Of a stretch of 64,000 nucleotides of DNA, positions 13,486 through 46,019 are shown piece by piece. Where the stretch lies: positions 248,001-312,000 of the IMG/VR virus record IMGVR_UViG_3300042482_000702. One strand, written 5' to 3'. The notes below the pieces were generated by a model. That model was not told the origin of the DNA. It saw only the letters and a list, made by a program, of their open reading frames with translations, and made no database searches. The number at the start of each line of letters is the position of its first letter. Position 1 is the first letter of the stretch. The translations under genes and the position numbers were made by a program.

Positions 13486-13518
13486 ATTTGGAATTATCTA
13501 AAAATGTATTATCTTTGT
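13486..13518 (+). promoter_or_regulatory. Bacteroidota sigma-A promoter for tmRNA
   Basis: TTTG (-33) ... TATCTTTG (-7 TAnnTTTG) just upstream of the tmRNA 5' end. Confidence 0.75.
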
Positions 13519-13531
13519 AGAGTTAAAATAT

Positions 13532-13940
13532 GGGAGTGACACGGAATTGACTATTCGTAATAGTTATTCGGGGCACGTAGTGAGATGTTCTCTATCACTT
13601 AAATCTATGGGTACAACAATTTAGACGGAAACGTTTTAAACAAAATGGCTCTAGTAGGTCTTGTACGTCAAGATGAGCTTGTGAACGTAGCGTAAGCAAA
13701 CACACATTGGGGTCGACGGATATGTGTACCTAGCAACAGAAATATCTTAAGGTGTGATACCACCCGAAGAGTGTCAAGGTCTCGTTTGAGGGTCTACCTA
13801 TTAAAGTGAACCTCCCACAGTTGTAGGTAATGATGGAAAAATTAGAACCTTCTATTTGTCAGTTGAGAATTAACTGAATAAACGTGTAGTCCTTAATAGG
13901 TAATACAAATAACACTTGGGTTCGAGTCCCAACACTTCCA
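13532..13940 (+). ncRNA. ssrA: tmRNA
   Basis: Acceptor GGGAGTG/CACTTCC with G3-U70; 5' GGAATTGAC; T-arm TTGGG-TTCGAGT-CCCAA; internal tag ORF 13627..13695; smpB nearby. Confidence 0.92.
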
Positions 13941-14065
13941 CGTCCACTGGAGAGTCCCAACACCTCCACACAAAAAAGAGACCTAAATGGTCTCTTTTTT
14001 TATTGATAATCACCAATAAAAAAACCACCCGAAGGTGGCTTATTATCAGTTCAAATGTTTATTTT

Positions 14066-14492: not shown

Positions 14493-14930
14493 CTATTTCA
14501 AGTCCCTTTTCATATCTCTTTCGATGTCCCGAGATTTGATGGTATCTCGTTTATCGTATGTTTTCTTCCCTTTGGCAAGAGCAATTTCCATTTTAATTAA
14601 TCCGGTGTCGTTTATGAAGATACGATAAGGAACGATGGTTACACCATTGATTAACTCATTCTCCCACTTATTAAGTTCTTTTCGTTTGGCTAATAGTTTT
14701 CTATCCTTTACGGTCTCGTGGAAGGACCCAAACCCATAATCGGAGATATTCATCCCCTTTATAAATAACTCCCCCTCATTGAAATAACAATACCCTTCAG
14801 AGATGGATACCTTTCCCTGACGAATGGACTTTACCTCTGAACCAACTAGTTTGATTCCCACAATTAATGTCTGTAGGAATGAATACTCAAACTTGGCTTT
14901 CTTATTGACTATGTTAATTGAATTTTTCAT
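14493..14930 (-). CDS. smpB: SsrA-binding protein SmpB
   Basis: NKKAKFEY, GIKLVGSEVKSIR, RKLL, AKGKKTYDKR motifs. Confidence 0.97.
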   Translation of the reverse strand: MKNSINIVNKKAKFEYSFLQTLIVGIKLVGSEVKSIRQGKVSISEGYCYFNEGELFIKGMNISDYGFGSFHETVKDRKLLAKRKELNKWENELINGVTIVPYRIFINDTGLIKMEIALAKGKKTYDKRDTIKSRDIERDMKRDLK

Positions 14931-14962: not shown

Positions 14963-14998
14963 AAAAAAAGGTGATACAAATTAATGTACCACCTTTTT
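14963..14998 (-). terminator. Intrinsic terminator ending the large ncRNA
   Basis: AAAAAGGTG..TAC / GTA..CACCTTTTT hairpin with U tract. Confidence 0.75.
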
Positions 14999-15883
14999 GG
15001 CTTAATACGATGAGAATACTCGTCTTATTGAGAATCTTCGGAAGGATTATTGTTTCCCTTCGTTTCCACCATCTTTTGAATGGTAACCCTCATTGCCGAT
15101 TGGTTAGACCAATCACTCCTTGAGATATCATCTACTCTCTCATTATTCAACTCTCTTTAACCTTGCGAGCTAACTCCGGATTCGACTCCGTAGAGGTTTT
15201 TGGCGAGAATACATTCAGACTTGCGGTCATCCTGTGCAACGAACGGCTCGTTACTATGTAGGCAACTTGTCGACGATACCTGGTAAACATTTTTGCTATT
15301 GTCTATTTAGTTTTTCACCATATGAAAATAGTTAATGTGTTGTGGATGTATTCAGGAAGTAGTTTACCGTAAGCTCCCTAACCTTTTGGGTTAAAGAATA
15401 CTAAACTTCCCGATGAGATATCCCTATCTCCAAATTTCAAGAATTCTTCAAATCAATATCTTGGTAGATATTTGATAGGGATAAAGTCAGCACCACCTGT
15501 TACTTAATCTTGCCTTTCGGCGTTAAGATTCCTTTTATTTTGGAACCCGCAATTATAAGGTCGGATAACCCTATTTCTTACTTGATTCCTATGGGTTCTT
15601 CTTATCTTGATTCCTCAATCAACCGGACAATCCACATTGCCAAGTTAGTATTCCATTTCCCTACGAAGTTATCCTCGGTACTACAGGACTACTAATATCC
15701 CACTTGCTTACTCGAGTTCGGTTTCCCAAACCACAAAATCACTAACACAAATGATTTCATTTTATCCCCGTTTCCGGGATTATTTAAAGATGATAAGCCA
15801 CCTATTATCTTTGATACAACACCGAAGTGTTATAATGGATAATCTAAAATTTCTAAGAACGTCTTTAAGGTTTCCCTTAATTG
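14963..15883 (-). ncRNA. Large (~920 nt) structured ncRNA, GOLLD-like candidate
   Basis: No credible ORF; own TAnnTTTG promoter (15889-15896) and terminator; many minus-strand GNRA/UUCG-capped hairpins. Confidence 0.7.
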
Positions 15884-15947
15884 TTTTACAAAGGTAAGTG
15901 ATTTTTTTCTAAAGTCAAATATTTTTGTAATTTTTTTTTAAAAAATA

Positions 15948-16041
15948 AAATGTGTTGTGTAAGCTCTACCACTGCAGCTAAACCTTGGTCACCAGGATTA
16001 CGGTTGTTGGAATCGAACCAACGACTCTACACGACACATTT
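15948..16041 (-). ncRNA. Circularly permuted tRNA mimic (YrlA/Y-RNA-like) #1
   Basis: Order is terminal helix, T-arm (GTTGG-TTCGATT-CCAAC), loop-closed acceptor-like stem, D-arm (TAGCTGCAGTGGTAGAGC), terminal helix. Confidence 0.75.
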
Positions 16042-16044
16042 ATA

Positions 16045-16136
16045 GTGGTATCAGATGGATTCGAACCACCGGCACAGGGTTTTTCAGAACCCTTGCTCTA
16101 CCAAGGAAGATAAATCTCCCACTGAGCTATAATACC
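16045..16136 (-). tRNA. Atypical tRNA-Phe-like (GAA) with a hairpin inserted in the D-loop and an irregular anticodon loop
   Basis: Acceptor GGTATTA/TGATACC, normal T-arm, D-loop insert GGGAGATTTATCTTCC, anticodon arm AGGGT-TCTGAAAA-ACCCT. Confidence 0.6.
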
Positions 16137-16147
16137 ATATAAAATAA

Positions 16148-16222
16148 TGTGGGTGTATGCTCTACCATCTGAGCTACGGATTTGAAACCGGAGGGATTTG
16201 AAACCTCGACACAACACCCACA
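16148..16222 (-). ncRNA. Circularly permuted tRNA mimic (YrlA/Y-RNA-like) #2
   Basis: GTGGGTGT/ACACCCAC terminal helix; T-arm-like GAGG-TTTCAAAT-CCCTC; CGG-loop-CCG; D-arm TAGCTCAGATGGTAGAGC. Confidence 0.7.
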
Positions 16223-16300
16223 CCATTAATTCAATGAACTTATTTTCTTCTACAAAGATAATACATTTATTTTAATCTGTCAAATCTTTTTTGATTTTTT

Positions 16301-16530: not shown

Positions 16531-16607
16531 TAGTCAGAACAGGATTCGAACCTGTGTACCCTCGTATGAGTTCGTCATACCGTGCATCTCCAATGTGCTA
16601 CCTGACT
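16531..16607 (-). ncRNA. tRNA-like RNA with non-canonical anticodon arm
   Basis: Acceptor AGTCAGG/TCTGACT and perfect T-arm ACAGG-TTCGAAT-CCTGT; anticodon arm TATGA-CGAAC-TCATA lacks U33. Confidence 0.55.
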
Positions 16608-34026: not shown

Positions 34027-34308
34027 AATTTCCTTATTTTATTTTTTATGTTTATTGAACTTCTCTTCGTTGGTATCAATTCCAACTCAAATGCCACTTT
34101 GGACACGAGAACCTCAGCAACAAGGTTTCATTTATAAATATAAGGATGTTTTGTTTTATTGTAAATAAAAAACCCCCAAGTTTCCTCGGAGGTTCTATGT
34201 AGGAGTTCTCGGGTATCTACACTGATTAACGACAATCAGACCATCGTTCGCGACCTGTAAGAGTCCAACGACTGATATTATACTATACTTACACTCAAAT
34301 ATCTATTG

Positions 34309-34381
34309 TGGTCCCGGAGAATTACGATATCCCGACTTCTACATTATGAGTGTAGCACTCTAACCTCTGAGTTACGAGACC
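34309..34381 (-). tRNA. tRNA CAT (Ile2 or Met)
   Basis: Cloverleaf; loop CTCATAA; T-loop ATCGTAA. Confidence 0.8.
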
Positions 34382-34421
34382 AATTATGGGTTTTTAATGA
34401 ACCCATAAAACATATGTCAAT

Positions 34422-34655
34422 TTATTGGTGGTGCTTAATGTACCTCCCAAATTTATCAACCCTCACAGAGAGTTTCTCCAATCTAAAGTTCCAATTATCG
34501 AACTTTCCTAAGCCAGATTTTACTCTCGCCTGTTTAACCGCAGATACTTCTGCCTTCTCACGTCCTTCTTCCGTAGTTTCTACGAAAAAAGTGGGAGCCT
34601 GAACACCAGTCTTACTGGTAGGGACTACTCTCCAAATTCTCAATTTCTGAGTCAT
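34422..34655 (-). CDS. Small hypothetical protein in tRNA array
   Basis: ORF track. Confidence 0.55.
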   Translation of the reverse strand: MTQKLRIWRVVPTSKTGVQAPTFFVETTEEGREKAEVSAVKQARVKSGLGKFDNWNFRLEKLSVRVDKFGRYIKHHQ

Positions 34656-34830
34656 AAATTTTAGCTAATAGCTAAAACTATGTGGAGTTGGGTTGGTTGT
34701 TTTTCATATTAATTAGTTTAATTTTTTAAATAAAATGATGTTTAAATCTCCAAGTAAAAAAAAATACTGTTATTAGTAGTATTATCTTTATTACCTTAAT
34801 AATCTTTTTTCCCATATTGATAATATTTTG

Positions 34831-34915
34831 TATCCGGAGAGGGACTTGAACCCTCAATCTCCTTTCGGAAAACTAGATTTTAAGTCTAGCGTGTATACCA
34901 TTTCACCACCCAGAT
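34831..34915 (-). tRNA. tRNA-Leu(TAA)
   Basis: Loop CTTAAAA; long variable arm with GAAA. Confidence 0.9.
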
Positions 34916-35135
34916 GTGTTCCCCCAATGAGATTAGTTTGGGGTAGAATTTTTTCGGTTTTTCTATTCAAAAGTCGAGACGGTCTTACCCGCACATAAAA
35001 GTCAACTATTACTTGGAGGTGAGTTAGTATGCTCCCTTTTTTCCAAAGACCTCATCTATCAAACCGTTTGAGGCGTCAGCTACATCTTTGTTTAAGAAAC
35101 GATGCCAAATCTCTTGAGTATCTCTATCTCAATTG

Positions 35136-35216
35136 AGCTTCCGGTTGGATTCGAACCAACGTGCCATTCGGTCCTACTTACAAAATAGGTGCAATCAACC
35201 ACTATGCGACGGAAGC
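35136..35216 (-). tRNA. tRNA-Thr(TGT) with enlarged variable region
   Basis: Loop TTTGTAA; 12-nt variable region. Confidence 0.85.
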
Positions 35217-35426
35217 CTGTTGCAGAGTATTTTTTTTAAGTAGAAGTCAACTCTGTCTCTTAAACTACTAAAAGAAACTGTCCAAGGTCTATCCTGCTTT
35301 CGCTGTCCAGATTTTTCTCTGTTTCTTAAAACATCATCACTTCGGCCACATTGGGAGAACCGCAGTTCCCACGTTGTTTAAGGAGGTAGTTGGCGGTGTA
35401 TCACACCGAGTTATGATAATGTATTG

Positions 35427-35500
35427 TACCCCCAGTGAGAGTCGAACTCACAAAACTCTTCATCCTAAGTGAAGCGACTTTCCCGTTTGTCCACAGGGGT
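35427..35500 (-). tRNA. tRNA-Leu(TAG) with short variable loop
   Basis: Loop CTTAGGA; variable region AGTTTT. Confidence 0.85.
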
Positions 35501-35562
35501 AAATTGATGGGACTTTAACCCATCTGTTGACTATAACAAAAACATAAAGAAAGAAAAATTAG

Positions 35563-35684
35563 TAGTGTAGATAGGAATCGAACCTACCTCGATGAATTAC
35601 TTGTAATATGCACCAACTCTTCTCTCCAATCCTAGTATTAAGGAGTGTTACCTACAAATTACCATCACTCAACCCTTTTACACC
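35563..35684 (-). ncRNA. tRNA-like RNA: acceptor and T-arm, no D-stem, long irregular helix in place of the anticodon arm
   Basis: GGTGTA/TACACT; GTAGG-TTCGATT-CCTAT; GATG GTAATTTGTA ... TACAAGTAATT CATC. Confidence 0.6.
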
Positions 35685-35689
35685 ATTTG

Positions 35690-35761
35690 TGACTCCACAG
35701 GGATTCGAACCCCGATAATTTCCTTAGAAGAGAAATGTCCTATCCGTTGAACGATGGAGCC
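35690..35761 (-). tRNA. tRNA-Arg(TCT)
   Basis: Loop CTTCTAA. Confidence 0.9.
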
Positions 35762-35766
35762 AATTT

Positions 35767-35984
35767 ATTCTGTTACCGACATAGATTGGTAATTAAGTGT
35801 GAAAGCCCAAACCCTTTCACTCCCGTATTATCATCCTGCCACATTCTTGACGAATGCCGACGTTTTCACTTAACCTTCCGTTAGACATGCGAATCTATGT
35901 TTTCTGTATGTGGTGAGTAACTTCCTTCCCCACTTGTGTTTCCGAGATATCGAGGGCACCATACTGTCTAACGTCAAACAGAAT
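35767..35984 (-). ncRNA. Candidate ~220-nt pseudoknotted ncRNA
   Basis: Terminal 8-bp stem plus two crossing 9-bp helices. Confidence 0.55.
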
Positions 35985-36194
35985 ATAATTTTTAAAATAG
36001 TTTGACCAAATTTTTCACCATTGCGGTCTTAAGGAGCTATGACTTCATCTCCATGTCCGTTATGGGTAATTACTCCCAGATGGATGACCGGTGCGCCGTT
36101 GTCTTTCATCATACTTTTCACCAACCTATGTGTTAAAGGGTTCCGGCAGTGTCCCCGAAGGTTACTTCATATAATTACTTTTTCACTATTTTTG

Positions 36195-36266
36195 AGCGAA
36201 TGGAGGGAATCGAACCCTCATCCCTTGATTGGAAGTCAAGAGTAATGACCATTATACGACATTCGC
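36195..36266 (-). tRNA. tRNA-Gly(TCC)
   Basis: Loop CTTCCAA; U73. Confidence 0.92.
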
Positions 36267-36399
36267 AGTTTAGATGAACTTCGGACTTGTGTACCGAAAT
36301 GAGACCCAATAATTAAATCACTAACCCCGGGTGTGGTCTATTCATCTATTTTTTTAAGCTTATACCTTTAAAATAAATTTTAATTTTAAGCTTATAAGC

Positions 36400-36573
36400 T
36401 TAAACTTTCGTTTTAAGGTTGTTAATCTCCTTCTCGATTCTTTTCTTATCAGAATCAGTTAAAGGAATCTTGGTATTCATAGTACCCTTTTCGGTTTTTA
36501 CACCATTTTTTAATTGTTTCTCCAACACTTCAAGAACTCTTTGTTGTCTTGACCTTTTCGCTGCTGTTGCCAT
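36400..36573 (-). CDS. Small basic protein (57 aa, not in ORF track)
   Basis: MATAAKRSRQQRVLEVLEKQLK...INNLKTKV. Confidence 0.55.
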   Translation of the reverse strand: MATAAKRSRQQRVLEVLEKQLKNGVKTEKGTMNTKIPLTDSDKKRIEKEINNLKTKV

Positions 36574-36595
36574 ACGGATTTAGTTATTAAATTAG

Positions 36596-36668
36596 TAGCG
36601 TAGGGCAGGTAACGCTCCTGCTTTGGTCGGCTTATGAGACCGATGAGATACTATACCTCCCCCTCGCG
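36596..36668 (-). tRNA. tRNA-Met(CAT), initiator-like
   Basis: C1 mismatched with position 72; loop CTCATAA; T-loop AGCGTTA. Confidence 0.7.
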
Positions 36669-36683
36669 ATGTATTATTTTTTG

Positions 36684-36755
36684 CGGTCTATGAGAGAATC
36701 GAACTCTCATCTCTACCGTGACAGGGTAGCATCCTAGCCGTTGAACGAATAGACC
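36684..36755 (-). tRNA. tRNA-Asp(GTC)
   Basis: Loop CTGTCAC; G73. Confidence 0.92.
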
Positions 36756-36896
36756 AAAATTTTCAATCCAAAGGTGACAAACCTATAACAATTGAAAGAG
36801 AAAGAACCGTGTTTCCCGGGTAGTGACTTCCCGTATTCTGTCTTCCTGTTTTGTTTTACAAAGATAGTTATTAAATCTTTAATAACCAATTTTTTT

Positions 36897-37502
36897 TTAC
36901 ACCATTTTATTAAGTGTTGGTAAATACCATTTAAATCTCACCGCCATTACTCTAACTGATATAATCACTAATGAAGTGGTTAAATATAACACATCTGAGT
37001 TTAGGTTAAATTTCCTAAGTATGAAGAACACAATCCCCCCTAATATACAAATGGTAGCATATATTTCTTTTTTAAAGATAACCGGTATTTCAGCACATAG
37101 AATATCTCTAATCACACCACCAAAACAAGCGGTCATTGTACCTAATGCGATACATATAATGGGATGTAGACCAATGTTTATTCCTTTTTCTAACCCAATC
37201 AATGTGAATACCCCTAAACCGATTGTATCAAATATAAAAAGATATATTTTAAATTTCTCTATTAGTTGTTTGAATAATAATGTTACTATAAACCCTGTTA
37301 TTATTACATAGATATAATCTATGTTGAGCATCCATCCCACCGGTGTTCTTCCAATCATTACATCTCTCAGTGTTCCTCCACCTAATGCGGTTACGAATGT
37401 AATTATAAACACACCAAATAAATCCATTTTTTTATCTATGGATACTAAAGCTCCGGATATGGCAAATGCCAGTGTTCCTATTAGGTCTAATAAATTAAAC
37501 AT
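36897..37502 (-). CDS. TRIC/UPF0126 (YadS-like) membrane protein
   Basis: Duplicated GTLAFAISGA...GGGTLRD and GLGVF...FGGVIRD repeats. Confidence 0.9.
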   Translation of the reverse strand: MFNLLDLIGTLAFAISGALVSIDKKMDLFGVFIITFVTALGGGTLRDVMIGRTPVGWMLNIDYIYVIITGFIVTLLFKQLIEKFKIYLFIFDTIGLGVFTLIGLEKGINIGLHPIICIALGTMTACFGGVIRDILCAEIPVIFKKEIYATICILGGIVFFILRKFNLNSDVLYLTTSLVIISVRVMAVRFKWYLPTLNKMV

Positions 37503-37549
37503 TAATCATTTATTTTAAATTAATTGGTCTTAACAATAGACCTTTTTTG

Positions 37550-37621
37550 TGGAGCTACACGGTAACGCTCCGTGTTCTATGATTTGCAAAACCATTGTAA
37601 TTGCTTTTATACGACAGCCCC
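37550..37621 (-). tRNA. tRNA-Ala(TGC)
   Basis: G3-U70; loop TTTGCAA; T-loop AGCGTTA. Confidence 0.85.
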
Positions 37622-37682
37622 AATTTTGGATAGATGAGGTTCTATCCGGACCAGTACCTTCTCCCTTGGGAGATGTCAGTTG

Positions 37683-37754
37683 TAGCCCCACCGGGAGTCG
37701 AACCCGACTTTTATGGATGAAAACCATATGTCCTAACCGATAGACGATAGGGCC
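37683..37754 (-). tRNA. tRNA-Glu(TTC)
   Basis: Loop TTTTCAT. Confidence 0.9.
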
Positions 37755-38108
37755 GTTTTGTATTACCAATATGTCAATTAACTTGTTTGTTTTTGATGGT
37801 ACAAAGATAATGCTTTATTTCATTCCACCAAACTTATTCTTCAATAATATTATTCAGAACCAAATCTAATGCGTGGTCTTCATCCCACTCTGATTCATCA
37901 ACAACATTTTTTAATCCGTAGGTTACTCCCAATATCGGTGAGTAATCCATAACCAATTCTTCTCTAATCATACCTGTTATTATTTTTTAGTTATTTTATC
38001 CACATATTTTTTACCTACGGCTACTAATAAAATAAAACATATCAATAATCCACTAATAATAACCACCAATTGTTCTCCTGTATATTCTTCCATATCTTTA
38101 ATTTGTTT

Positions 38109-38339
38109 TTACCAAGTATTGGTGTTATAAATACAAAACTCTGAACCCACTTGGGCGTTTCTCCAATCATTCGGATATAGATAAAATAATTTATCATCAC
38201 CGGTACATTCATTTCTAATTACAACAGAATAATCTCGTACTCTATTACTAACCACTAAACCACAATTACAACTCACATACTCATTAATAGAACAAGATAA
38301 GAATAGTGGGATAACTATAATTAAAATTAATTTTTTCAT
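38109..38339 (-). CDS. Small lipoprotein-like protein (start MKKLIL)
   Basis: Signal peptide ending FLSC; promoter at about 38357. Confidence 0.6.
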   Translation of the reverse strand: MKKLILIIVIPLFLSCSINEYVSCNCGLVVSNRVRDYSVVIRNECTGDDKLFYLYPNDWRNAQVGSEFCIYNTNTW

Positions 38340-38395
38340 AACCCTTTTATTTTTGACAAAGATACAACTTAATTTCATTCTACCAAATATAAATC

Positions 38396-38532
38396 AAAAA
38401 AAAAATCCACCTTTTTTTGAAGATGGATTTTTAAATATTTTTTTACTTAAATATATATCATACCATCGTCTTCCAAGTTGTATCTCTACCCTCAGTTCCC
38501 GCTATCGTAAGTAATATGTTTAAAGTTTGCAT
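38396..38532 (-). promoter_or_regulatory. Leader peptide (38458..38532) plus terminator: putative attenuator
   Basis: 24-aa ORF MQTLNILLTIAGTEGRDTTWKTMV; GAAGA/GATGG in the ORF can pair with the terminator arm CCATCTTC. Confidence 0.5.
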
Positions 38533-38662
38533 TTTTTGTGTTATTGTAATTTCTAATAAATATACGACATTTTGTGAAAGTGTCAAGTGGTTTTAAAATT
38601 ATTTTTTAAACTTAATCATAATTTAAGATATTTATAGTAAATAAACTTTTAAAAATTCAATT

Positions 38663-38833
38663 ATGAATAAAGAACAAATTTTTGGTGTTATTCGCCACGT
38701 ATTCACTGCCATTGGTGGTATTGTCATTGCACAAGGTTACATATCTGATAGTATGTACACTGAATTATCCGGAGCGATATTAACATTAACTGGTGTAATT
38801 TGGTCAATTGTTGCTAAAAAATCTACAGTATAA
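38663..38833 (+). CDS. Small two-TM putative holin (56 aa, not in ORF track)
   Basis: MNKEQIFGVIRHVFTAIGG...GVIWSIVAKK; TATTTATA upstream. Confidence 0.65.
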   Translation: MNKEQIFGVIRHVFTAIGGIVIAQGYISDSMYTELSGAILTLTGVIWSIVAKKSTV

Positions 38834-39597
38834 TAAACAGAAAAAGGTTAGAGAAATCTAACCTTTTTTTATGCCTTTAAGTTAAATAAAAAAAAGCTTA
38901 ACAACCCCGCCCTCGGGTCGTAGCGGGCAACTTGAGAATTACTTCTCGTGGGAATTCCGGAATTGGTTGTGTTCCTCACCGGCGTACCAGTCCTTATCTA
39001 TCCTTTAACCGTATTTCTACGGTGCTACTGTTGGGAGGTCACCCCTATCAACACACCTAGTCCATTAGTTTTTTAGAGTATGGACACCCCGGTTGTTAAA
39101 CTTTTTAATTTAATATTCTCTTACATAACGGCGATTATCGCCGGTATTAACCTAATTGGTAAATAAAAAAACAGACAATGGGGATTCTCCGATATTTCAG
39201 TCTTAGGGGACTAGACGGGCATCATACCCGTGTTTACCCTCGGCGGTCTCTTGGTTTGGTTGATTACTCCAAACCTCACCCCTACACTACCACTGACGTA
39301 AGTTATAGGTCTGTTTTTAATTCTTTGTAAAACAACAGACGGCTTTGAAGTACATCCACACCAACAATTATGACCGACTTCACCTTATGTGGAAGTTTAG
39401 TTTTACAATATCTATCAAGATTTACCCCAGTCTTTAGGTCGCTATTAATACCTTTAACCCATACTCTCGGAACACTATGGAGATGGAATCAAACCATCTA
39501 ATAACCCGTCGGTTATAGCGTCAGCCTTATATTTCCTATCTTTTGGAGATAACTTTCGTCTGTCACCTTATTCAACCTTATATGAATAAATCTTTTG

Positions 39598-39704
39598 CCC
39601 TTCCAGTGGGAATCGAACCCACATACTCTTAATACATTCTTGGAATGGTTACCGGAGGGAGATGTATTCGTCTCTGTGTTTTGCTCTTTTTAAACTACAG
39701 AAGG
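39598..39704 (-). ncRNA. tRNA-like RNA with an expanded anticodon arm
   Basis: Acceptor CCTTCTG/TGGAAGG; D- and T-arms present; about 55-nt central region with AATACAT/ATGTATT helix. Confidence 0.55.
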
Positions 39705-39710
39705 ATTTTG

Positions 39711-39781
39711 CACGTTTGATAGGTCTCGAACCCATACAAATTCTTTTGGAGAGAATTATGCTACCATTACATCACAAACGT
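39711..39781 (-). tRNA. tRNA-Trp(CCA)
   Basis: Loop CTCCAAA. Confidence 0.9.
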
Positions 39782-39782
39782 A

Positions 39783-40430
39783 TTATTTTAACCATTTTCT
39801 AACAGCGTTATCACTAACACCATATTTACGACCTGTTCCTCTATACCCAAGATTAATAATATCTTGTTTTATTTGTTCTATGGACGGTCTTTCAACTTTT
39901 CTATTTTGTTTATTTGAACATTTAATACATTTATCACTTTTTTTATCTTTTGTACTACCACATTCACAATGATATTTAATTTTATTGGATTTCCCGGAAT
40001 ATGTACTAGTTTGGGAGTGACAATTAGGACATAAAAATCTTAAATTTTCTATTCTATTATCATTATTAACTCCATTTATATGGTCTAAATGTAGACTAAT
40101 ATTTTTACCATTCCACACCCCATTATTACCACATTCAATACATTTATATTCAAGTAAATTTTTCTTTAATATTCTATTTTTAATTTTTTGTCTTGGAAAT
40201 GTTGAATTTTCAACAAAAACATCCTCATCTAATCTAACCTCTTTAGGTCCAGTCCCATAATAATTATATTTAGGAATCTCTAATCCCAATTTAATTATTC
40301 TATCTTTAATGTTCCTATAACCACCCGAACCATTTGGTGATAAATTAAATAATAAAATAACCTCTCTCATAGATTTTGAATTATTCAAAATTTCAAATAA
40401 CTCTTCTTTTGTAATAGTTTTTAAGTTCAT
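39783..40430 (-). CDS. HNH homing endonuclease inside the tRNA array
   Basis: CIECG...LHLDHINGVNNDNRIENLRFLCPNCHSQT; C-terminal HTH. Confidence 0.9.
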   Translation of the reverse strand: MNLKTITKEELFEILNNSKSMREVILLFNLSPNGSGGYRNIKDRIIKLGLEIPKYNYYGTGPKEVRLDEDVFVENSTFPRQKIKNRILKKNLLEYKCIECGNNGVWNGKNISLHLDHINGVNNDNRIENLRFLCPNCHSQTSTYSGKSNKIKYHCECGSTKDKKSDKCIKCSNKQNRKVERPSIEQIKQDIINLGYRGTGRKYGVSDNAVRKWLK

Positions 40431-40661
40431 ATTATGTCTTTTATTATAAATATCTTAAAAAATACCAAAGTTCACCATAACCTATGTTTTACCAAAAATA
40501 ATAACATAATCATTCGTAGTCCCCTGCCGGGCAACCCTCCTACTTTTTCACACAATCCGGATGCCTCCAAATCTAATTTTCTTTTTTACCCCTATTAAGA
40601 AACGCGTTTTCCGTTCGGTAGTTCAAGCCCATTTTCGTGAGTTAAATAATTATGTTATTTG

Positions 40662-40744
40662 AGTTCAGGGTCGGATTCGAACCGACGAGGACTTTCGTCA
40701 TTGGTTTTGCAGACCAATCTAATCAACCACTCTAGCACCTGAAC
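40662..40744 (-). tRNA. tRNA-Cys(GCA) with long variable arm
   Basis: Loop CTGCAAA; U73; GAC-GAAA-GTC variable hairpin. Confidence 0.88.
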
Positions 40745-40805
40745 ATTTAAAGTAAAATATAATTTACAAATACACCCATTTTTGTAAATTATATTTAATG
40801 TTAAT

Positions 40806-41186
40806 TTAATAACCTATTTCATCTTTAACCTCCCATTGTTTATCAATGGGGATTCTTTCAATCTTTTCCACCGGAACAAATCCGTCAAATCCTTTGTCTT
40901 TAACATCTTCAAAATGTTCTATGGTGTCCAAGTAAAATCCAAATTGATATCTAACGTATTGGAACTTCTCTCCGTCCCAATAAGCGACGTGGTTGTTTCT
41001 ACAGAAACCATTATACCACCCCTCAACCATTTCATTTTTTGGTATCATCATTTCTATTTTTATATTAGCACCCTTGTCTATATAGCCTGAATCTCTCAAG
41101 CGCCATGCCTTATTAGGGTCTCTATATAAACTTAGGGTCACGTAGTTACTGGATGAACCCAAATAACTTACTTGCTGAGAACTCAT
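40806..41186 (-). CDS. Hypothetical protein (true start probably downstream, near MIPKNEM)
   Basis: ORF; the annotated 5' end overlaps an RNA motif. Confidence 0.55.
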   Translation of the reverse strand: MSSQQVSYLGSSSNYVTLSLYRDPNKAWRLRDSGYIDKGANIKIEMMIPKNEMVEGWYNGFCRNNHVAYWDGEKFQYVRYQFGFYLDTIEHFEDVKDKGFDGFVPVEKIERIPIDKQWEVKDEIGY

Positions 41187-41250
41187 TTGTGTTGATAGAG
41201 GCGTTCTCTATACGTTTAATTTACCTATTCCTTTCTCAAGGGAACAACAC
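41171..41250 (-). ncRNA. Pseudoknotted scaffold RNA, copy A
   Basis: GTGTTGTTCCCTTGAGAAAGGAA-[insert]-AACACAAATGAGTTCTCAG. Confidence 0.65.
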
Positions 41251-41547
41251 ATCTACCATTTCTGATAGTATCTTTATGTAAATAACCAAGACAATTGTAC
41301 AAATGCTACCACGTATTTCTTTGGTTCACTTATTATTTACAAAGGTTTCAATGTTTAACCTATTTTTACAACGATACAATTACATTTCTACTTTTGAGAA
41401 TCTTTCTCAAAAAAACTAATCTTTTTCTATGATTAACATACTCATCAGCATCATTGGCTTTATGACCTCTAAATATTGATTCGGTTATCTCACAATCCAA
41501 TTTAATAATTTCGGTTATTATCTCCTCCGTGGTTAAATTACTTTTTT

Positions 41548-41871
41548 TCATATCTTCTCAAATTCGTCTTCAAATCCGTACCACTCATCACCATTTTCAT
41601 CTTCGTACCAACATTTGTATTCTCGCTCGTACCGATTCCAATCAATTCTTGTTAATTCAACTTCATTTCCCCCATCTTTGTTTATAACCACTTCACCCAC
41701 TTGGAATGTTTGTGGTGCGTAATTGTCGATTGTTTTACTTTGAATAATTAAATCTCCAACACTTTTAACCTCATCGGTTTGGATATTGGTGTAATTTCCT
41801 CCGGATGATAATTTCCACCCTTTACTATACAACCAAATCGTAAAATCTAAAATTTCTTTTTCTAATAACAT
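41548..41871 (-). CDS. Hypothetical protein
   Basis: ORF downstream of a TAnnTTTG promoter at about 41893. Confidence 0.55.
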   Translation of the reverse strand: MLLEKEILDFTIWLYSKGWKLSSGGNYTNIQTDEVKSVGDLIIQSKTIDNYAPQTFQVGEVVINKDGGNEVELTRIDWNRYEREYKCWYEDENGDEWYGFEDEFEKI

Positions 41872-41903
41872 AATACATCTGTTTTGTGAGTACAAAGATA
41901 ATA

Positions 41904-42236
41904 CTATTTTTTACCCAATCCTACAATCGTAACACTTTTAATCTTTTTTTTACCTTTTTTAACTTTTTTCTCAACTTTTGGTTGGGAAACTCTACTTTGT
42001 TTCGCCAATACCTTCCTTGTTCTTTTACACATTTTTTCTAAAATCTCCAATGATTCAAGATTCTTAAAGAAAACAGTTAGAAGTTCTTCCGATTCGTCTG
42101 AAGAATAAATATTATCACCAATCATTCTTGGTTTTAATAATTTATTAAAACTAATAAATGGTGTTTGAGTAATATTCTCAATTCCCGCACCCATAGACAA
42201 TTCTCCCAATCCCGCAACAACAATACTTTTTTTCAT
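41904..42236 (-). CDS. Hypothetical protein
   Basis: ORF track. Confidence 0.55.
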   Translation of the reverse strand: MKKSIVVAGLGELSMGAGIENITQTPFISFNKLLKPRMIGDNIYSSDESEELLTVFFKNLESLEILEKMCKRTRKVLAKQSRVSQPKVEKKVKKGKKKIKSVTIVGLGKK

Positions 42237-42297
42237 AATTTTTATATATTTAATTTCGACAAAGATAATACAATTTTTTAAACTACCAAACTTTATT

Positions 42298-42807
42298 TTA
42301 AAAAAATAAATAAGGTTCCCATTCTTTTGGGATATCGTGATGAACTTGTTTCATTAACATCAGATAATGTGGTCGTCTTGGTTGAGGTATGTCTTTACCA
42401 TATTCCTCTAACGTCAAATTGGACTTCTCACCGTTACATCTCCTACAAGCGGTAACCAAGTTGTCCCAACTATCTTTACCCCCCTTAGATTGGGGTACTA
42501 CATGGTCTAATGTTAATGTCTTTCTGTTATTACACCCACAATATACACATTCAAAGTTATCTCTACGATAAACATTCTCTCTATTTAAAGGAACTTTTTG
42601 TATGATTTGATTAACATACTTATATACCCGAATGATTGATGGTTTTTTGATGTCCAATTCAGGATTTACTAATTTGAATGATTCCGGATGTTCGTTTATA
42701 ACATCGGCATTACCTTTATAAGAAATGACGAAAGCCCTCTCTGTGGAAATAATACTCCTCGCCATGAAACTTGAATCTAAAACCAAAGTTTTTTGGTAAC
42801 TACTCAC
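42298..42807 (-). CDS. HNH endonuclease (McrA-like)
   Basis: RDNFECVYCG...TLDHVVPQSKGGKDSWDNLVTACRRCN. Confidence 0.9.
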   Translation of the reverse strand: MSSYQKTLVLDSSFMARSIISTERAFVISYKGNADVINEHPESFKLVNPELDIKKPSIIRVYKYVNQIIQKVPLNRENVYRRDNFECVYCGCNNRKTLTLDHVVPQSKGGKDSWDNLVTACRRCNGEKSNLTLEEYGKDIPQPRRPHYLMLMKQVHHDIPKEWEPYLFF

Positions 42808-42837
42808 GATTTCTAATTTTTAATTAAACATTTTTTT

Positions 42838-43437
42838 TTACTCTAAACTATCAGGATAGTATAAAAGTGTTGGATTTTTCTTTTGGATGTCTATCTCCGG
42901 AAATTTTTCTTGGAATTTTCTAACATCAAATTTTCTGGTAATTAAATGAACACCATTTTTTGTTGGGATGACAGCCTCAACTTTATCACCAACCGGTTGT
43001 AAAACAATTAGAAATTTTGACACTTCAAAAAGAGTATCAAAATCTTTAGTATCAATATCTACAATCCATCTTTTTTCCTGTGTCTTAATTTGACCCACAA
43101 CCGAATCAAATAAACCTTTTTGGTTTTGAACCCCATTTTTGATTCTCTCAGCAAGAAGTGCTAACATATCCAAAGATACATCACGATGATTTTGTTTTTG
43201 GATGTGGATGTAAGCTCTCGCTTTAAACATCTCACATAATTGGATAATCTCATCATACCTTTTCTCCAAATGCTCAATACTATCAATACAGTAAGTTTTA
43301 ATTGTTCTTACTGATTGGTGATTGTCCCTCTCATCGATGGGTTGGTCTTTTTTACGCTTAAAAACATATAACATATAAAAATCACCCTTTTCGGAGAAAT
43401 TTAACAATGGTTTCAGTTGTTCGATGTTGTTTATCAT
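42838..43437 (-). CDS. Conserved phage protein with AEP/PrimPol-like DxD and TxxGxH motifs
   Basis: WIVDIDTKD and PTKNGVHLI. Confidence 0.5.
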   Translation of the reverse strand: MINNIEQLKPLLNFSEKGDFYMLYVFKRKKDQPIDERDNHQSVRTIKTYCIDSIEHLEKRYDEIIQLCEMFKARAYIHIQKQNHRDVSLDMLALLAERIKNGVQNQKGLFDSVVGQIKTQEKRWIVDIDTKDFDTLFEVSKFLIVLQPVGDKVEAVIPTKNGVHLITRKFDVRKFQEKFPEIDIQKKNPTLLYYPDSLE

Positions 43438-43453
43438 TATTTCTATTTTTTTG

Positions 43454-43524
43454 TTCCCCCAGGTGGTATCGAACCAACTTCCCGATATTAAAAGTATCGT
43501 GCTTCACCTTAAAGCTTTGGGGGA
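43454..43524 (-). tRNA. tRNA-Lys(TTT)
   Basis: Loop CTTTTAA. Confidence 0.88.
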
Positions 43525-43606
43525 GTTTGAGCTCATTTCACTTTGTTATTTGGCTCAAAACATAACTAATTTGAGCTTAATAATCAAAGTTTGTGAGCCA
43601 CATTTG

Positions 43607-43678
43607 TTGTTCCGGTAGGATTTGAACCTACGACCGCTGAAGTATCAGTTCAGAACTCTACCGCTGAGTTACGGAACA
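43607..43678 (-). tRNA. tRNA-Ile(GAT)
   Basis: Loop CTGATAC. Confidence 0.9.
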
Positions 43679-43684
43679 ATATTG

Positions 43685-43756
43685 TCGGGATAGCAGGGGT
43701 CGAACCTGCCGCCTCTTGGTCCCAAACCAAGCGTCTCACCCCAAGACTATATCCCG
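43685..43756 (-). tRNA. tRNA-Pro(TGG)
   Basis: C1-G72; loop TTTGGGA. Confidence 0.9.
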
Positions 43757-43827
43757 AATAATAAACTACCACCTGACTCTTTTCGAACTTTGCAGGCTCG
43801 TATCATTCCCTAATGGTAGTTATTTTG

Positions 43828-43901
43828 TCTAAATGACTGGACTCGAACCAGCGGTCTCTACATTCCAAGTGTAGCGGATTAACCAACTTTCCCACATCTA
43901 G
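43828..43901 (-). tRNA. tRNA-Pro(TGG), second copy
   Basis: Loop CTTGGAA (A37 instead of G37). Confidence 0.85.
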
Positions 43902-43920
43902 ATTTTAATTTTATTTTCTG

Positions 43921-44006
43921 CGGAGAGCAGAATACTTGAAATCCATCCCTTTTACAGAACCACTCGCTTAGCAGGCGGTGACAATACCCTGATTGTTTTA
44001 CTCTCC
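43921..44006 (-). tRNA. tRNA-Ser(GCT)
   Basis: Loop CTGCTAA; long variable arm; G73. Confidence 0.8.
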
Positions 44007-44012
44007 ATTTTG

Positions 44013-44084
44013 TGTCCCCAAGAGGATTCGAACCCCTATCTCTGATGCCGTAAATCAAAATTCTATCCGTTGAACTATGGTGAC
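44013..44084 (-). tRNA. tRNA-Arg(ACG)
   Basis: Loop TTACGGC. Confidence 0.8.
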
Positions 44085-44088
44085 AATT

Positions 44089-44208
44089 TGAGGTTGAGAA
44101 CTCCTCTGTGTTGTGTGTTTAAGACTAACTTTTTATACACTAAATAGGACTTACGCAAGTAGGTTGGCCTAATTTTAATACTTAATTCCCCTCTCACAGG
44201 AACAACAC
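44089..44208 (-). ncRNA. Pseudoknotted scaffold RNA, copy B
   Basis: GTGTTGTTCCTGTGAGAGGGGAA-[~73 nt]-AACACAGAGGAGTTCTCAACCTCA. Confidence 0.65.
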
Positions 44209-44213
44209 GGCTG

Positions 44214-44303
44214 TGAGGTTGAGAACTCCTCTGTGTTAGTCTTTACTAGTTAATTGCAATAACCGTGTAGCCACTCTATTTTCCCCTCTCACAGGAACAA
44301 CAC
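44214..44303 (-). ncRNA. Pseudoknotted scaffold RNA, copy C
   Basis: Same 23-nt and 24-nt flanks as copy B, with a different ~43-nt insert. Confidence 0.65.
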
Positions 44304-44306
44304 ATT

Positions 44307-44495
44307 TTACTTCCATTGAGTTTTTCGGTTATACTTCCAAGTTTTATGTTCTCTGTATTTGTGAGAGAACTGACCTCTTCTATAATGAACACCCTCATCC
44401 CAATAAGGTGGATATTCAAACTTTAACCAAATTACTCTGTAATCTTTGGAACAAGTTGCCTTGTTCAGTTTCATTCTGTTTGTGTTTACACTCAT
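44307..44495 (-). CDS. Small basic hypothetical protein
   Basis: C-terminal TWKYNRKTQWK. Confidence 0.6.
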   Translation of the reverse strand: MSVNTNRMKLNKATCSKDYRVIWLKFEYPPYWDEGVHYRRGQFSHKYREHKTWKYNRKTQWK

Positions 44496-44545
44496 AATCT
44501 TGAGTCTGTTGTTTAGCAGACCTCAAAGATTATCCAATACCTTTT

Positions 44546-44803
44546 TCATAACCGTAATTTATAAATTCTTTTATAATCATCCATCGCCGACTTCAGATTT
44601 ACAATACATTCTCGGTAATTAACATTATCACCAAGATTAAATCTTTCATTTTCTTGTTCCCTCTTGAATAACACTTTCAATGAATTATCAATGTTAGATA
44701 GAATGTCCAAGTAAATCATTTCCTTATCTTTGGATTTTTTTAAATCAAATTTCAAATCAACAATTAGACCTTCTAATTCTTCAATTTTTTTATCTTCATC
44801 CAT
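44546..44803 (-). CDS. Small coiled-coil protein
   Basis: ORF track. Confidence 0.55.
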   Translation of the reverse strand: MDEDKKIEELEGLIVDLKFDLKKSKDKEMIYLDILSNIDNSLKVLFKREQENERFNLGDNVNYRECIVNLKSAMDDYKRIYKLRL

Positions 44804-44817
44804 AACAAATAATTTTG

Positions 44818-44890
44818 GGAGTTAGTTCGGTATCGAACCGAATTCTTTGGTACCACAAACCAACGCTTCACCGTTAAAGCTTCAAACTCC
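44818..44890 (-). tRNA. tRNA-His(GTG)
   Basis: Encoded G-1 pairing with C73; loop TTGTGGT. Confidence 0.9.
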
Positions 44891-44954
44891 ATATTACCCC
44901 ACTTCCCCGGCTTAACGGACCGAGTGCCATATAGGAGGTGTGGGGGTAACCTCG

Positions 44955-45026
44955 CTCCTCCGGGTGGGATTGAACCACCATGATTTGATTAACAGTCAAA
45001 CATAATTACCATTATATGACAGAGGA
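44955..45026 (-). tRNA. tRNA-Asn(GTT)
   Basis: Loop CTGTTAA; G73. Confidence 0.9.
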
Positions 45027-45176
45027 AGATATGACCACTATGTTATTTTGCGAACGTATGAAGCTCGTATCATTGTTAAGTCATAGTAGTCCAAGGCGTT
45101 ACGCACCCATCTGGTAACTTTACTTCTCTTGAGTCCGGGTAAGCGCTTACCAACTCGGGGGTTGTTTCCTTGTTTG

Positions 45177-45249
45177 TGGGGACTACCGGTTACGCTCCGG
45201 TCTCCTTGATTCTTCAGACCAATGCTTTCACTAGATTAGCTTAATCCCC
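45177..45249 (-). tRNA. tRNA-Phe(GAA)
   Basis: Loop CTGAAGA; T-loop AGCGTAA. Confidence 0.85.
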
Positions 45250-45392
45250 AATTAAAATGATGGTGAGATACCCGTTTCGTCTCACTCTTGACTGCTTAAT
45301 AGTAGTTTTACTGTGCACAGGCAGAGGGTTATAATTTCGTTTATTGTAATCAGAATTGTCGACATTCTTTCATACAGAAATTCATCATTTTG

Positions 45393-45473
45393 TGGGACAC
45401 TATGGAATCGAACCATACCCTACTACAGAACGGTGTTACAGACCGCTTATCACACCAGTGACTGAAGCATCCC
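45393..45473 (-). tRNA. tRNA-Tyr(GTA)
   Basis: Loop CTGTAAC; variable arm. Confidence 0.85.
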
Positions 45474-45479
45474 TTTTTG

Positions 45480-45550
45480 TACCTCGTGATGGTTATGCTC
45501 CACCGCCATTTGTATGTAAAACAAATACGCTCCTATTACGCCAACGAGGT
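45480..45550 (-). tRNA. tRNA-Val(TAC)
   Basis: Loop TTTACAT; T-loop AGCATAA. Confidence 0.8.
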
Positions 45551-45643
45551 AAATAAAATTAACAATTGCTATCAGGATTTAAACGTCGCTCAGAATACTT
45601 ACTGACGCCCACCGATTGGGTACGATGACTAGTTAATTTTTTG

Positions 45644-45715
45644 TACCGATGGGTGGGATTGAACCACCGACACCTTCCGTATGAAAGAAGTGCTCTACCA
45701 CTGAGCTACATCAGT
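45644..45715 (-). tRNA. tRNA with CAT anticodon (Met/Ile2)
   Basis: Canonical cloverleaf; loop TTCATAC. Confidence 0.8.
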
Positions 45716-45769
45716 ATTTTGGTGGATATAGGCTCATCACCTATTCGTGGGTTTCCACCGAACCCCTCG

Positions 45770-45841
45770 TTACCCCTAATGGAATCGAACCACTCCCGCA
45801 TGGACCAAAACCATGTGTACTAACCGATATACGAAGGGGCA
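45770..45841 (-). tRNA. tRNA-Gln(TTG)
   Basis: U1-A72; loop TTTTGGT. Confidence 0.88.
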
Positions 45842-45847
45842 AAATTG

Positions 45848-45929
45848 CGGAAGAGACAGGATTCGAACCTGCAAAGCTGTTACACCCGATAGTTTTCAAG
45901 ACTACTTAACGACCACTGTCCACTCTTCC
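45848..45929 (-). tRNA. tRNA-Ser(TGA)
   Basis: Loop CTTGAAA; long variable arm; G73. Confidence 0.88.
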
Positions 45930-46019
45930 ATTTTATTCTTACCAATATGTCAAATAACTAATTCCTTTATTTTGATGGGACAAAGGTAATCCTTTTTTTT
46001 TAACTTCCAAACTTTTTTA

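Follow-up and report, generated by a model that had tools for sequence, protein, structure and literature searches.

A GOLLD-family RNA with its own promoter and terminator among the translation-related genes of a 322-kb phage

The locus and its transcript

The window, by which the whole stretch of 64,000 nt analysed here is meant, is part of a 322,477-bp virus record and carries on its minus strand, at 14963-15885, a genuine, expressed phage RNA of the GOLLD family, both domains of which are of the type known from the GOLLD RNA env-38. Between its promoter and its terminator the RNA measures about 920 nt, and in it a 5' domain precedes the conserved 3' domain. Downstream of it and on the same strand lies smpB (14493-14930; Pfam SmpB PF01668, 159 bits), and farther out, on the plus strand, a phage tmRNA gene (13532-13943; RF00023, 62.3 bits), which has its own promoter at 13487-13517, was found by Rfam and missed by ARAGORN, and is covered in the metatranscriptomes discussed below. 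On the upstream side three tRNA-like modules, recognized by Rfam alignment and in relatives, occupy 15935-16233 of the minus strand, with their own promoter at 16284-16253. About 24 tRNAs were counted in the window, with tRNA-like genes directly upstream of GOLLD, and some 22 tRNA genes stand in arrays at 34300-46000 on the minus strand. The GC content of the RNA gene is 37.6%, compared with about 30% in the protein-coding flanks and 32.3% in the window as a whole, and the preliminary description, made from the letters alone, was right to call the region richer in GC than its flanks and roughly right to call it free of ORFs, the longest internal table-11 ORF having 61 aa.

The promoter, at 15919-15889 on the minus strand, was recognized by pattern search and by its conservation, and is of the Bacteroidota type (TTTG-19 nt-TAccTTTG). 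The pattern TTTG-N19-TAnnTTTG has 15 matches in the window, compared with 3.3 expected, a count reached in none of 100 shuffles; other matches precede the tmRNA gene, smpB, the tRNA-mimic cluster and tRNA arrays, several of the latter having it at 37832, 38387, 42290 and 46011. The motif is kept in the related loci L006, L021, L059, L037, L066 and L019, and many other members of the family have similar -7 boxes. An own promoter of this type in many GOLLD genes may be a new observation. Transcription would start at about 15883 ± 3, and the promoter type suggests a host among the Bacteroidota for the 322-kb phage. The other end of the gene is marked by an intrinsic terminator (14998-14965, minus strand), where a hairpin of 14 pairs, conserved in L037, L021, L006 and L059, leads into a T run; this run shares bases with the -33 TTTG of the promoter of smpB (14965-14935). 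The ornate non-coding RNA of about 920 nt with its own promoter and terminator, as originally proposed, is thus borne out, and the two signals together make for a well-defined transcript.

The first part of the transcript is a 5' leader (15885-15832, minus strand), delimited in an alignment of 30 homologues. Its hairpin TAAGG-GAAA-CCTTA (15879-15866), closed by a GAAA loop, is lineage-variable, and it is followed by a near-invariant motif, GUUCUUAGAAA at 15860-15850 on the minus strand, with the family consensus GUUCUUUGAAA, which is found at the same place in 30 homologues. No pairing partner was found for this leader motif. Just downstream stands the hairpin AACAC-TTCG-GTGTT (15831-15818), AACAC-UUCG-GUGUU in the RNA, which is retained family-wide with differing stem sequences, the per-column pairing count being blurred in its case by misalignment. 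Altogether about 80 nt of 5' leader, comprising the GUUCUUUGAAA motif and the conserved hairpin, are common to the family and lie upstream of the published env-38 construct; this shared leader ahead of the first base of that construct may likewise be new.

Evidence for expression comes from contigs of four public metatranscriptomes that were compared with the window between 13000 and 17000. In three of them (X16, X17 and X18) coverage is limited to the tmRNA (13536-13937) and to the GOLLD RNA (15010-15830), with zero depth on smpB, on a 121-aa ORF, on the flanking ORFs and on nearly all of the upstream cluster, and the silence of the flanks argues against a carry-over of DNA. A 596-nt contig of X17 is identical to the window at 15232-15827, and a 416-nt contig of X16 is identical at 15233-15648, with a second stretch at 15674-15825; X18 contributed a 636-nt contig from a close relative at a depth of 511. 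Samples containing the exact sequence come from lake and estuary. The exact-match contigs end at 15825 (X16) and 15827 (X17), inside the UUCG hairpin and just downstream of the leader motif. The 5' leader may accordingly be trimmed by processing, or it may merely be poorly captured or assembled, metatranscriptome contigs being strandless and a poor measure of transcript ends.

Family membership and domain architecture

The family is identified by a scan of the whole window with Rfam 15, in which RF02032 (GOLLD) matches the minus strand from 15413 to 15007 with a score of 288 bits (E 3e-81), almost twice the gathering cut-off of 150 bits, and the match is complete, running over model positions 1-416 of 416. 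The preliminary description had guessed at a GOLLD-class RNA on the grounds of size and tRNA-adjacent phage context, and had allowed that a strong hit would confirm the RNA and remove its novelty; the full-length cmscan match does both. Against 4227 Rfam families at gathering threshold, the whole window returned GOLLD, tRNA and tmRNA and nothing beyond these; ROOL, OLE, group I and II introns, RNase P and riboswitch leaders were thereby discarded as candidates. The virus record as a whole carries a single GOLLD match. In a blastn search with the 921-base stretch, its positions 82-840, covering parts of both halves of the RNA, aligned at about 65% identity with two uncultured phages (634 and 642 kb), whose GOLLDs score 275-287 bits with RF02032, and in relatives the model scores 244-317 bits in all 12 that were scanned. 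The occurrence of GOLLD members in jumbo and mega phages may also be new.

The GOLLD family was reportedly described by Weinberg and co-workers in 2009, with members in a Lactobacillus brevis prophage and in Mycobacterium tRNA arrays. With a match at nearly twice the threshold, and with a family described in 2009 whose structure was solved in 2025, the RNA of the window is already known; it is an ordinary member of this family and not a new kind of RNA. That the region might be decayed coding sequence, or chance structure in AT-rich DNA, deserves practically no credence: five short ORFs of 41-61 aa do overlap it, but substitutions among the homologues preserve base pairs and not reading frames, the minimum free energy of the single sequence has a z-score of -4.99 against shuffles, and the Rfam match is present.

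The RF02032 model spans only the conserved 3' domain (407 nt here), and the 5' half was for this reason put to a separate test. Three pattern scans of IMG/VR, followed by an nhmmer filter, provided 30 distinct full or partial homologues from uncultured phages; the first of these scans, with a 14-mer on viral contigs, had returned 57 loci, of which 13 proved real after the nhmmer filter, the rest being mostly chance. The 5' half aligns with 29 other loci that are Rfam-positive or env-38-like, and from about 15803 on it runs collinear to the env-38 5' domain, as judged against the sequence printed in the supplement to PMC12286853. These are also the observations that speak against a new family of large ornate RNAs, resembling GOLLD merely in size and context, which would have had in its favour that the earlier reader was unable to confirm the family and that the Rfam model leaves the 5' half untouched; with the 3' half fitting the full RF02032 at nearly twice its gathering score, and with the 5' half alignable to Rfam-positive or env-38-like loci and collinear with the structurally solved GOLLD, it is exceedingly improbable.

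The RNA, then, is a GOLLD with two domains, a 5' domain at 15803-15414 (the cap in the cryo-EM structure of env-38) and a Rfam-covered 3' domain at 15413-15007 (the ring), both on the minus strand. In the RNAalifold consensus of the 30-sequence alignment, compensatory changes are seen in 68 of the 94 pairs of the 5' domain, with 97.6% of cells paired, and in 72 of the 94 pairs of the 3' domain, with 96.0% paired; in controls in which the 3' partners were slid by 1-3 columns, the corresponding values were 15-36 compensatory pairs and 37-47% paired. An independent RNAalifold run on 13 sequences found 78 of 114 pairs to be compensatory.

All nine of the motifs that had been quoted in the preliminary description were found on the minus strand, and most of the helices drawn from them stand. 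Besides the two leader hairpins given above, the motif search located the hairpins CCCG-GAAA-CGGG (15778-15767), GCC-GAAA-GGC (15521-15512) and GACC-GCAA-GTC (15228-15218), and the helix strands GGAAGT (15410-15405) and ACTTCC (15360-15355). The helices CCCG/CGGG, GCC/GGC, GAC/GTC and GGAAGT/ACTTCC are paired in 27-30 of 28-30 homologues, with many compensatory changes, and in the Rfam model GGAAGT/ACTTCC, which covaries, forms the first stem. The longer-range helix between TCCCTATC (15481-15474, minus strand) and GATAGGGA (15428-15421, minus strand) holds in part: its UCCY:GGGA portion is conserved, but the remainder competes with a local hairpin, GAGAUA/UAUCUC at 15430-15415, which itself covaries, and the helix at its full length was dropped on account of this clash.

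Stacked covarying pairs outside the nested consensus add three helices, all on the minus strand. A 7-bp helix closes the linker (GGUAAAC at 15368-15362 with GUUUACC at 15288-15282; 6 of 7 pairs compensatory), the linker itself being a variable stretch inside the 3' domain (15351-15289, minus strand) that is marked by low sequence conservation and holds no tRNA here. GUUGCC at 15266-15261 pairs at long range with GGCAAU at 15097-15092 (6 pairs, 3 of them compensatory), in a pseudoknot or a tertiary pairing that the nested consensus leaves out. The loop GUGG (15635-15632) of the 5' domain pairs with CCAC (15345-15342) at the start of the linker, with compensatory changes in 4 of 4 pairs. In this context one should recall that some pairings of GOLLD predicted from covariation proved to be intermolecular bridges (PMC12286853); each of the three additional helices may form either within one molecule or between copies.

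The two domains differ in how they relate to the closest loci. Identity to the window in the 5' domain is 86-89% in L006, L021, L059 and L037, whereas in the 3' domain it is 73-76% in the first three and 88% in L037, and such discordance among close relatives suggests recombination between domains.

Likeness to the env-38 cage

The GOLLD env-38 comes from a marine metagenome and was shown by cryo-EM to form a homo-14-meric nanocage, with caps made of the 5' domains and rings made of the 3' domains (Kretsch et al., Nature 2025; PMC12286853). The same work describes GOLLD as being of phage origin and located near tRNA islands, with an expression that rises at lysis and a recovery in ribosome pull-down, and notes a disordered linker in env-38 and variable 5' halves in the family (PMC12286853). 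The comparison of env-38 with the window rests on four short fragments and on an inspection by eye of the printed sequence, and the fragments match the same alignment positions in family loci with 90-97% identity. Identity between the window RNA and env-38-like members is about 57-63%. Env-38 and the window RNA have both domains in the same order, an internal linker that varies and a place in phage DNA next to tRNA genes; they also share the motifs GGATAAA, GAGTA(A/G)GCAAGTG and GGTGGTGC, a conserved 3' core and the CAAAA loop. The window RNA differs from env-38 in having a promoter and terminator of its own and in lacking an upstream tRNA-Met, and about 80 nt of its 5' leader are missing from the published env-38 construct. 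Within RF02032 as a whole, members share with the window RNA the phage setting beside tRNA genes, and the 3' domain fits their model end to end; it is set apart from other members by a host that is probably a member of the Bacteroidota, as its promoter type suggests, and by a jumbo phage genome of 322 kb, its 5' half being of the env-38 or lake-marine type.

Two loops of the 3' domain bear on assembly. The hairpin at 15390-15382 (minus strand) has a CAAAA loop that is invariant in 30 of 30 homologues, and it is probably the A-rich loop of env-38 that makes an inter-subunit A-minor contact (L14 / bridge B6, mapped from the text of the paper). The hairpin at 15193-15174 (minus strand) has the loop GUCGAA with a self-complementary CG; among 28 sequences the loop is of the UCGAA type in 7, of the CGCAA/CGCGA type in 20 and an outlier in 1, so that the window has the CG variant and most relatives GC, both being self-complementary. 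Self-complementary CG or GC has been reported for the symmetric kissing loop L21a of GOLLD (PMC12286853), to which, going by that text, the loop of the window would correspond, with CG in place of the GC of env-38.

On the strength of these likenesses it is most likely, by analogy with env-38, that the window RNA forms a 14-mer cage. In the mechanism proposed here, transcription of the minus strand from the RNA's own promoter, at about 15883, to the intrinsic terminator at about 14963 would yield an RNA whose two domains (15803-15414, and 15413-15007 with the variable linker), homologous to those of env-38, would fold independently; copies of it would assemble by themselves and in the absence of protein into a 14-mer cage of D7 symmetry, with the 5' domains as caps and the 3' domains as rings, and the RNA would accumulate as a stable and abundant species. 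A comparable RNA-only cage is known from ROOL, the rumen-originating ornate large RNA (RF03087-type), which is likewise large, phage-encoded and found near tRNA islands (PMC12286853). ROOL is nevertheless unrelated to GOLLD in sequence and fold and forms an 8-mer, and no match to it at gathering threshold was found in the window.

smpB, tmRNA and tRNA mimics around GOLLD

The position of the RNA next to smpB had been taken in the preliminary description as a sign of a role in translation rescue. As stated, this is unsupported: smpB adjoins GOLLD only in the clade of the window, that is, in its close relatives L006, L021, L037 and L059, and in L066, and it was found in none of the other loci, so that such a role is only weakly hinted at. 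A more direct tie to trans-translation would be given if the RNA were a structured 5' leader or cis-regulator of smpB, which begins 33 nt downstream on the same strand, in an order kept in five related loci (L006, L021, L037, L059 and L066). A strong terminator hairpin with its T run stands between the two, however, smpB has a separate promoter match at 14965-14935, the metatranscriptomes X16-X18 cover the RNA with zero depth on smpB, and most homologues have no smpB in the flanks examined, tRNAs following instead. The terminator, the promoter of smpB itself and its silence in the metatranscriptomes led to the rejection of this reading, which is very improbable, and in the mechanism favoured here GOLLD would not regulate its neighbour.

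By Rfam and nhmmer, with flanks of a few kb, a tmRNA gene was found near GOLLD in 8 of 12 loci examined closely. In relatives GOLLD consistently sits within tRNA arrays of its own strand, all tRNAs found in these loci being on that strand, and most lineages have a tRNA-Met on the 5' side of GOLLD, an arrangement also reported for env-38. Phage islands of genes for translation-related RNAs are thus a regular place for GOLLD, and the tmRNA link is a modest addition to the published link with tRNAs, a neighbourhood that does not in itself demonstrate a function; its recurrence may be no more than a consequence of phages grouping their RNA genes in tRNA islands.

Directly upstream of GOLLD, the three tRNA-like modules are of two kinds. 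The outer two have circularly permuted tRNA shapes and align end to end with YrlA (RF02553), with scores of 41 and 26 bits, below the gathering score of 69 bits. Their arms follow one another in the order T arm, capped acceptor-like stem, D arm, and the whole is closed by a stem; this topology is the same as that of YrlA (PMC4201824). The middle module is a pseudo-tRNA, which scores as a tRNA and has a 20-nt hairpin insertion in its D loop and a 6-nt NYGAAA loop replacing the anticodon loop. The cluster is conserved in relatives, the closing stem of the first module showing two compensatory pairs in L037. ARAGORN called one of the mimics a tRNA-Pro(tgg), and in relatives tRNA-??? with 2- or 4-base anticodons, but a reading as decoding tRNAs is rejected on the grounds of the D-loop insertion and NYGAAA loop in the central module and of the permuted arm order in the outer ones. 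In Salmonella, the RNA ligase RtcB is encoded together with Ro60 and YrlA. A search of the 322-kb phage genome found neither a Ro60/TROVE gene nor an RtcB gene. YrlA genes normally lie beside Ro60 (PMC4201824), and the phage of the window differs in this respect. The mimics may be Y-RNA-like decoys for host Ro60 or for tRNA-binding enzymes.

These neighbours raise the question of whether GOLLD works together with tmRNA-SmpB and the tRNA mimics, for instance by caging tRNA-shaped RNAs or serving as their scaffold. In favour of such a partnership one may cite the tmRNA in the flanks of 8 of the 12 related loci, the adjoining smpB in two lineages, the YrlA-like mimics immediately upstream in the clade of the window, the coverage of tmRNA and GOLLD alone within the 4-kb stretch in three metatranscriptomes, and, from the literature, the tRNAs in some GOLLD linkers and the ribosome pull-down (PMC12286853). 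On the other hand, the co-location may just mirror the habit of large phages of clustering their stable-RNA genes, 4 of the 12 loci have no tmRNA nearby, and GOLLD is found in Lactobacillales prophages and in Mycobacterium tRNA arrays as well, for which no such link is reported (PMC12286853). The partnership is unlikely, although some room should be left for it.

The best explanation as a whole, in which high confidence can be placed, remains a GOLLD gene of a 322-kb phage with a probable Bacteroidota host. The RNA is encoded within a phage island of translation-related RNA genes (tRNAs, tmRNA, smpB and tRNA mimics), and its cage would act on the translation apparatus in lytic infection, for instance by retaining or sequestering RNAs of tRNA shape or factors associated with ribosomes; such an action in lytic growth is speculation, drawn from the gene neighbourhood and the published pull-downs. 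Going further, it is conceivable, if quite unlikely, that in the present group of aquatic large phages, probably infecting Bacteroidota, the cage, tmRNA, SmpB and the mimics constitute a module of translation takeover, which would perhaps enclose or present tRNA-shaped RNAs, with the leader motif GUUCUUUGAAA perhaps serving as a processing or docking signal. Among bacterial and phage RNAs in search of a function GOLLD is one of the largest, in spite of its solved cage structure, and the RNA of the window offers a clean example for follow-up, with a defined transcript, expression in the environment and a compact gene island that it shares with tmRNA, smpB and tRNA mimics. Small leads toward the function of GOLLD are the recurrence of tmRNA nearby and the conserved 5' leader, which lies outside the existing models.

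Two further observations concern tRNA-shaped RNAs in these islands. At 16531-16607 on the minus strand of the window a weak tRNA match (33 bits) has a 21-nt insertion in the region of the anticodon arm and could be an intron-bearing tRNA or another tRNA-like RNA. Furthermore, in three other lineages, L003 (3837-3910), L024 (8120-8190) and L065 (10087-10157), the 3' end of GOLLD is adjoined or overlapped by tRNA-like genes to which ARAGORN assigns 2-base 'anticodons', and with these cases odd tRNA-shaped RNAs beside GOLLD extend beyond the clade of the window.
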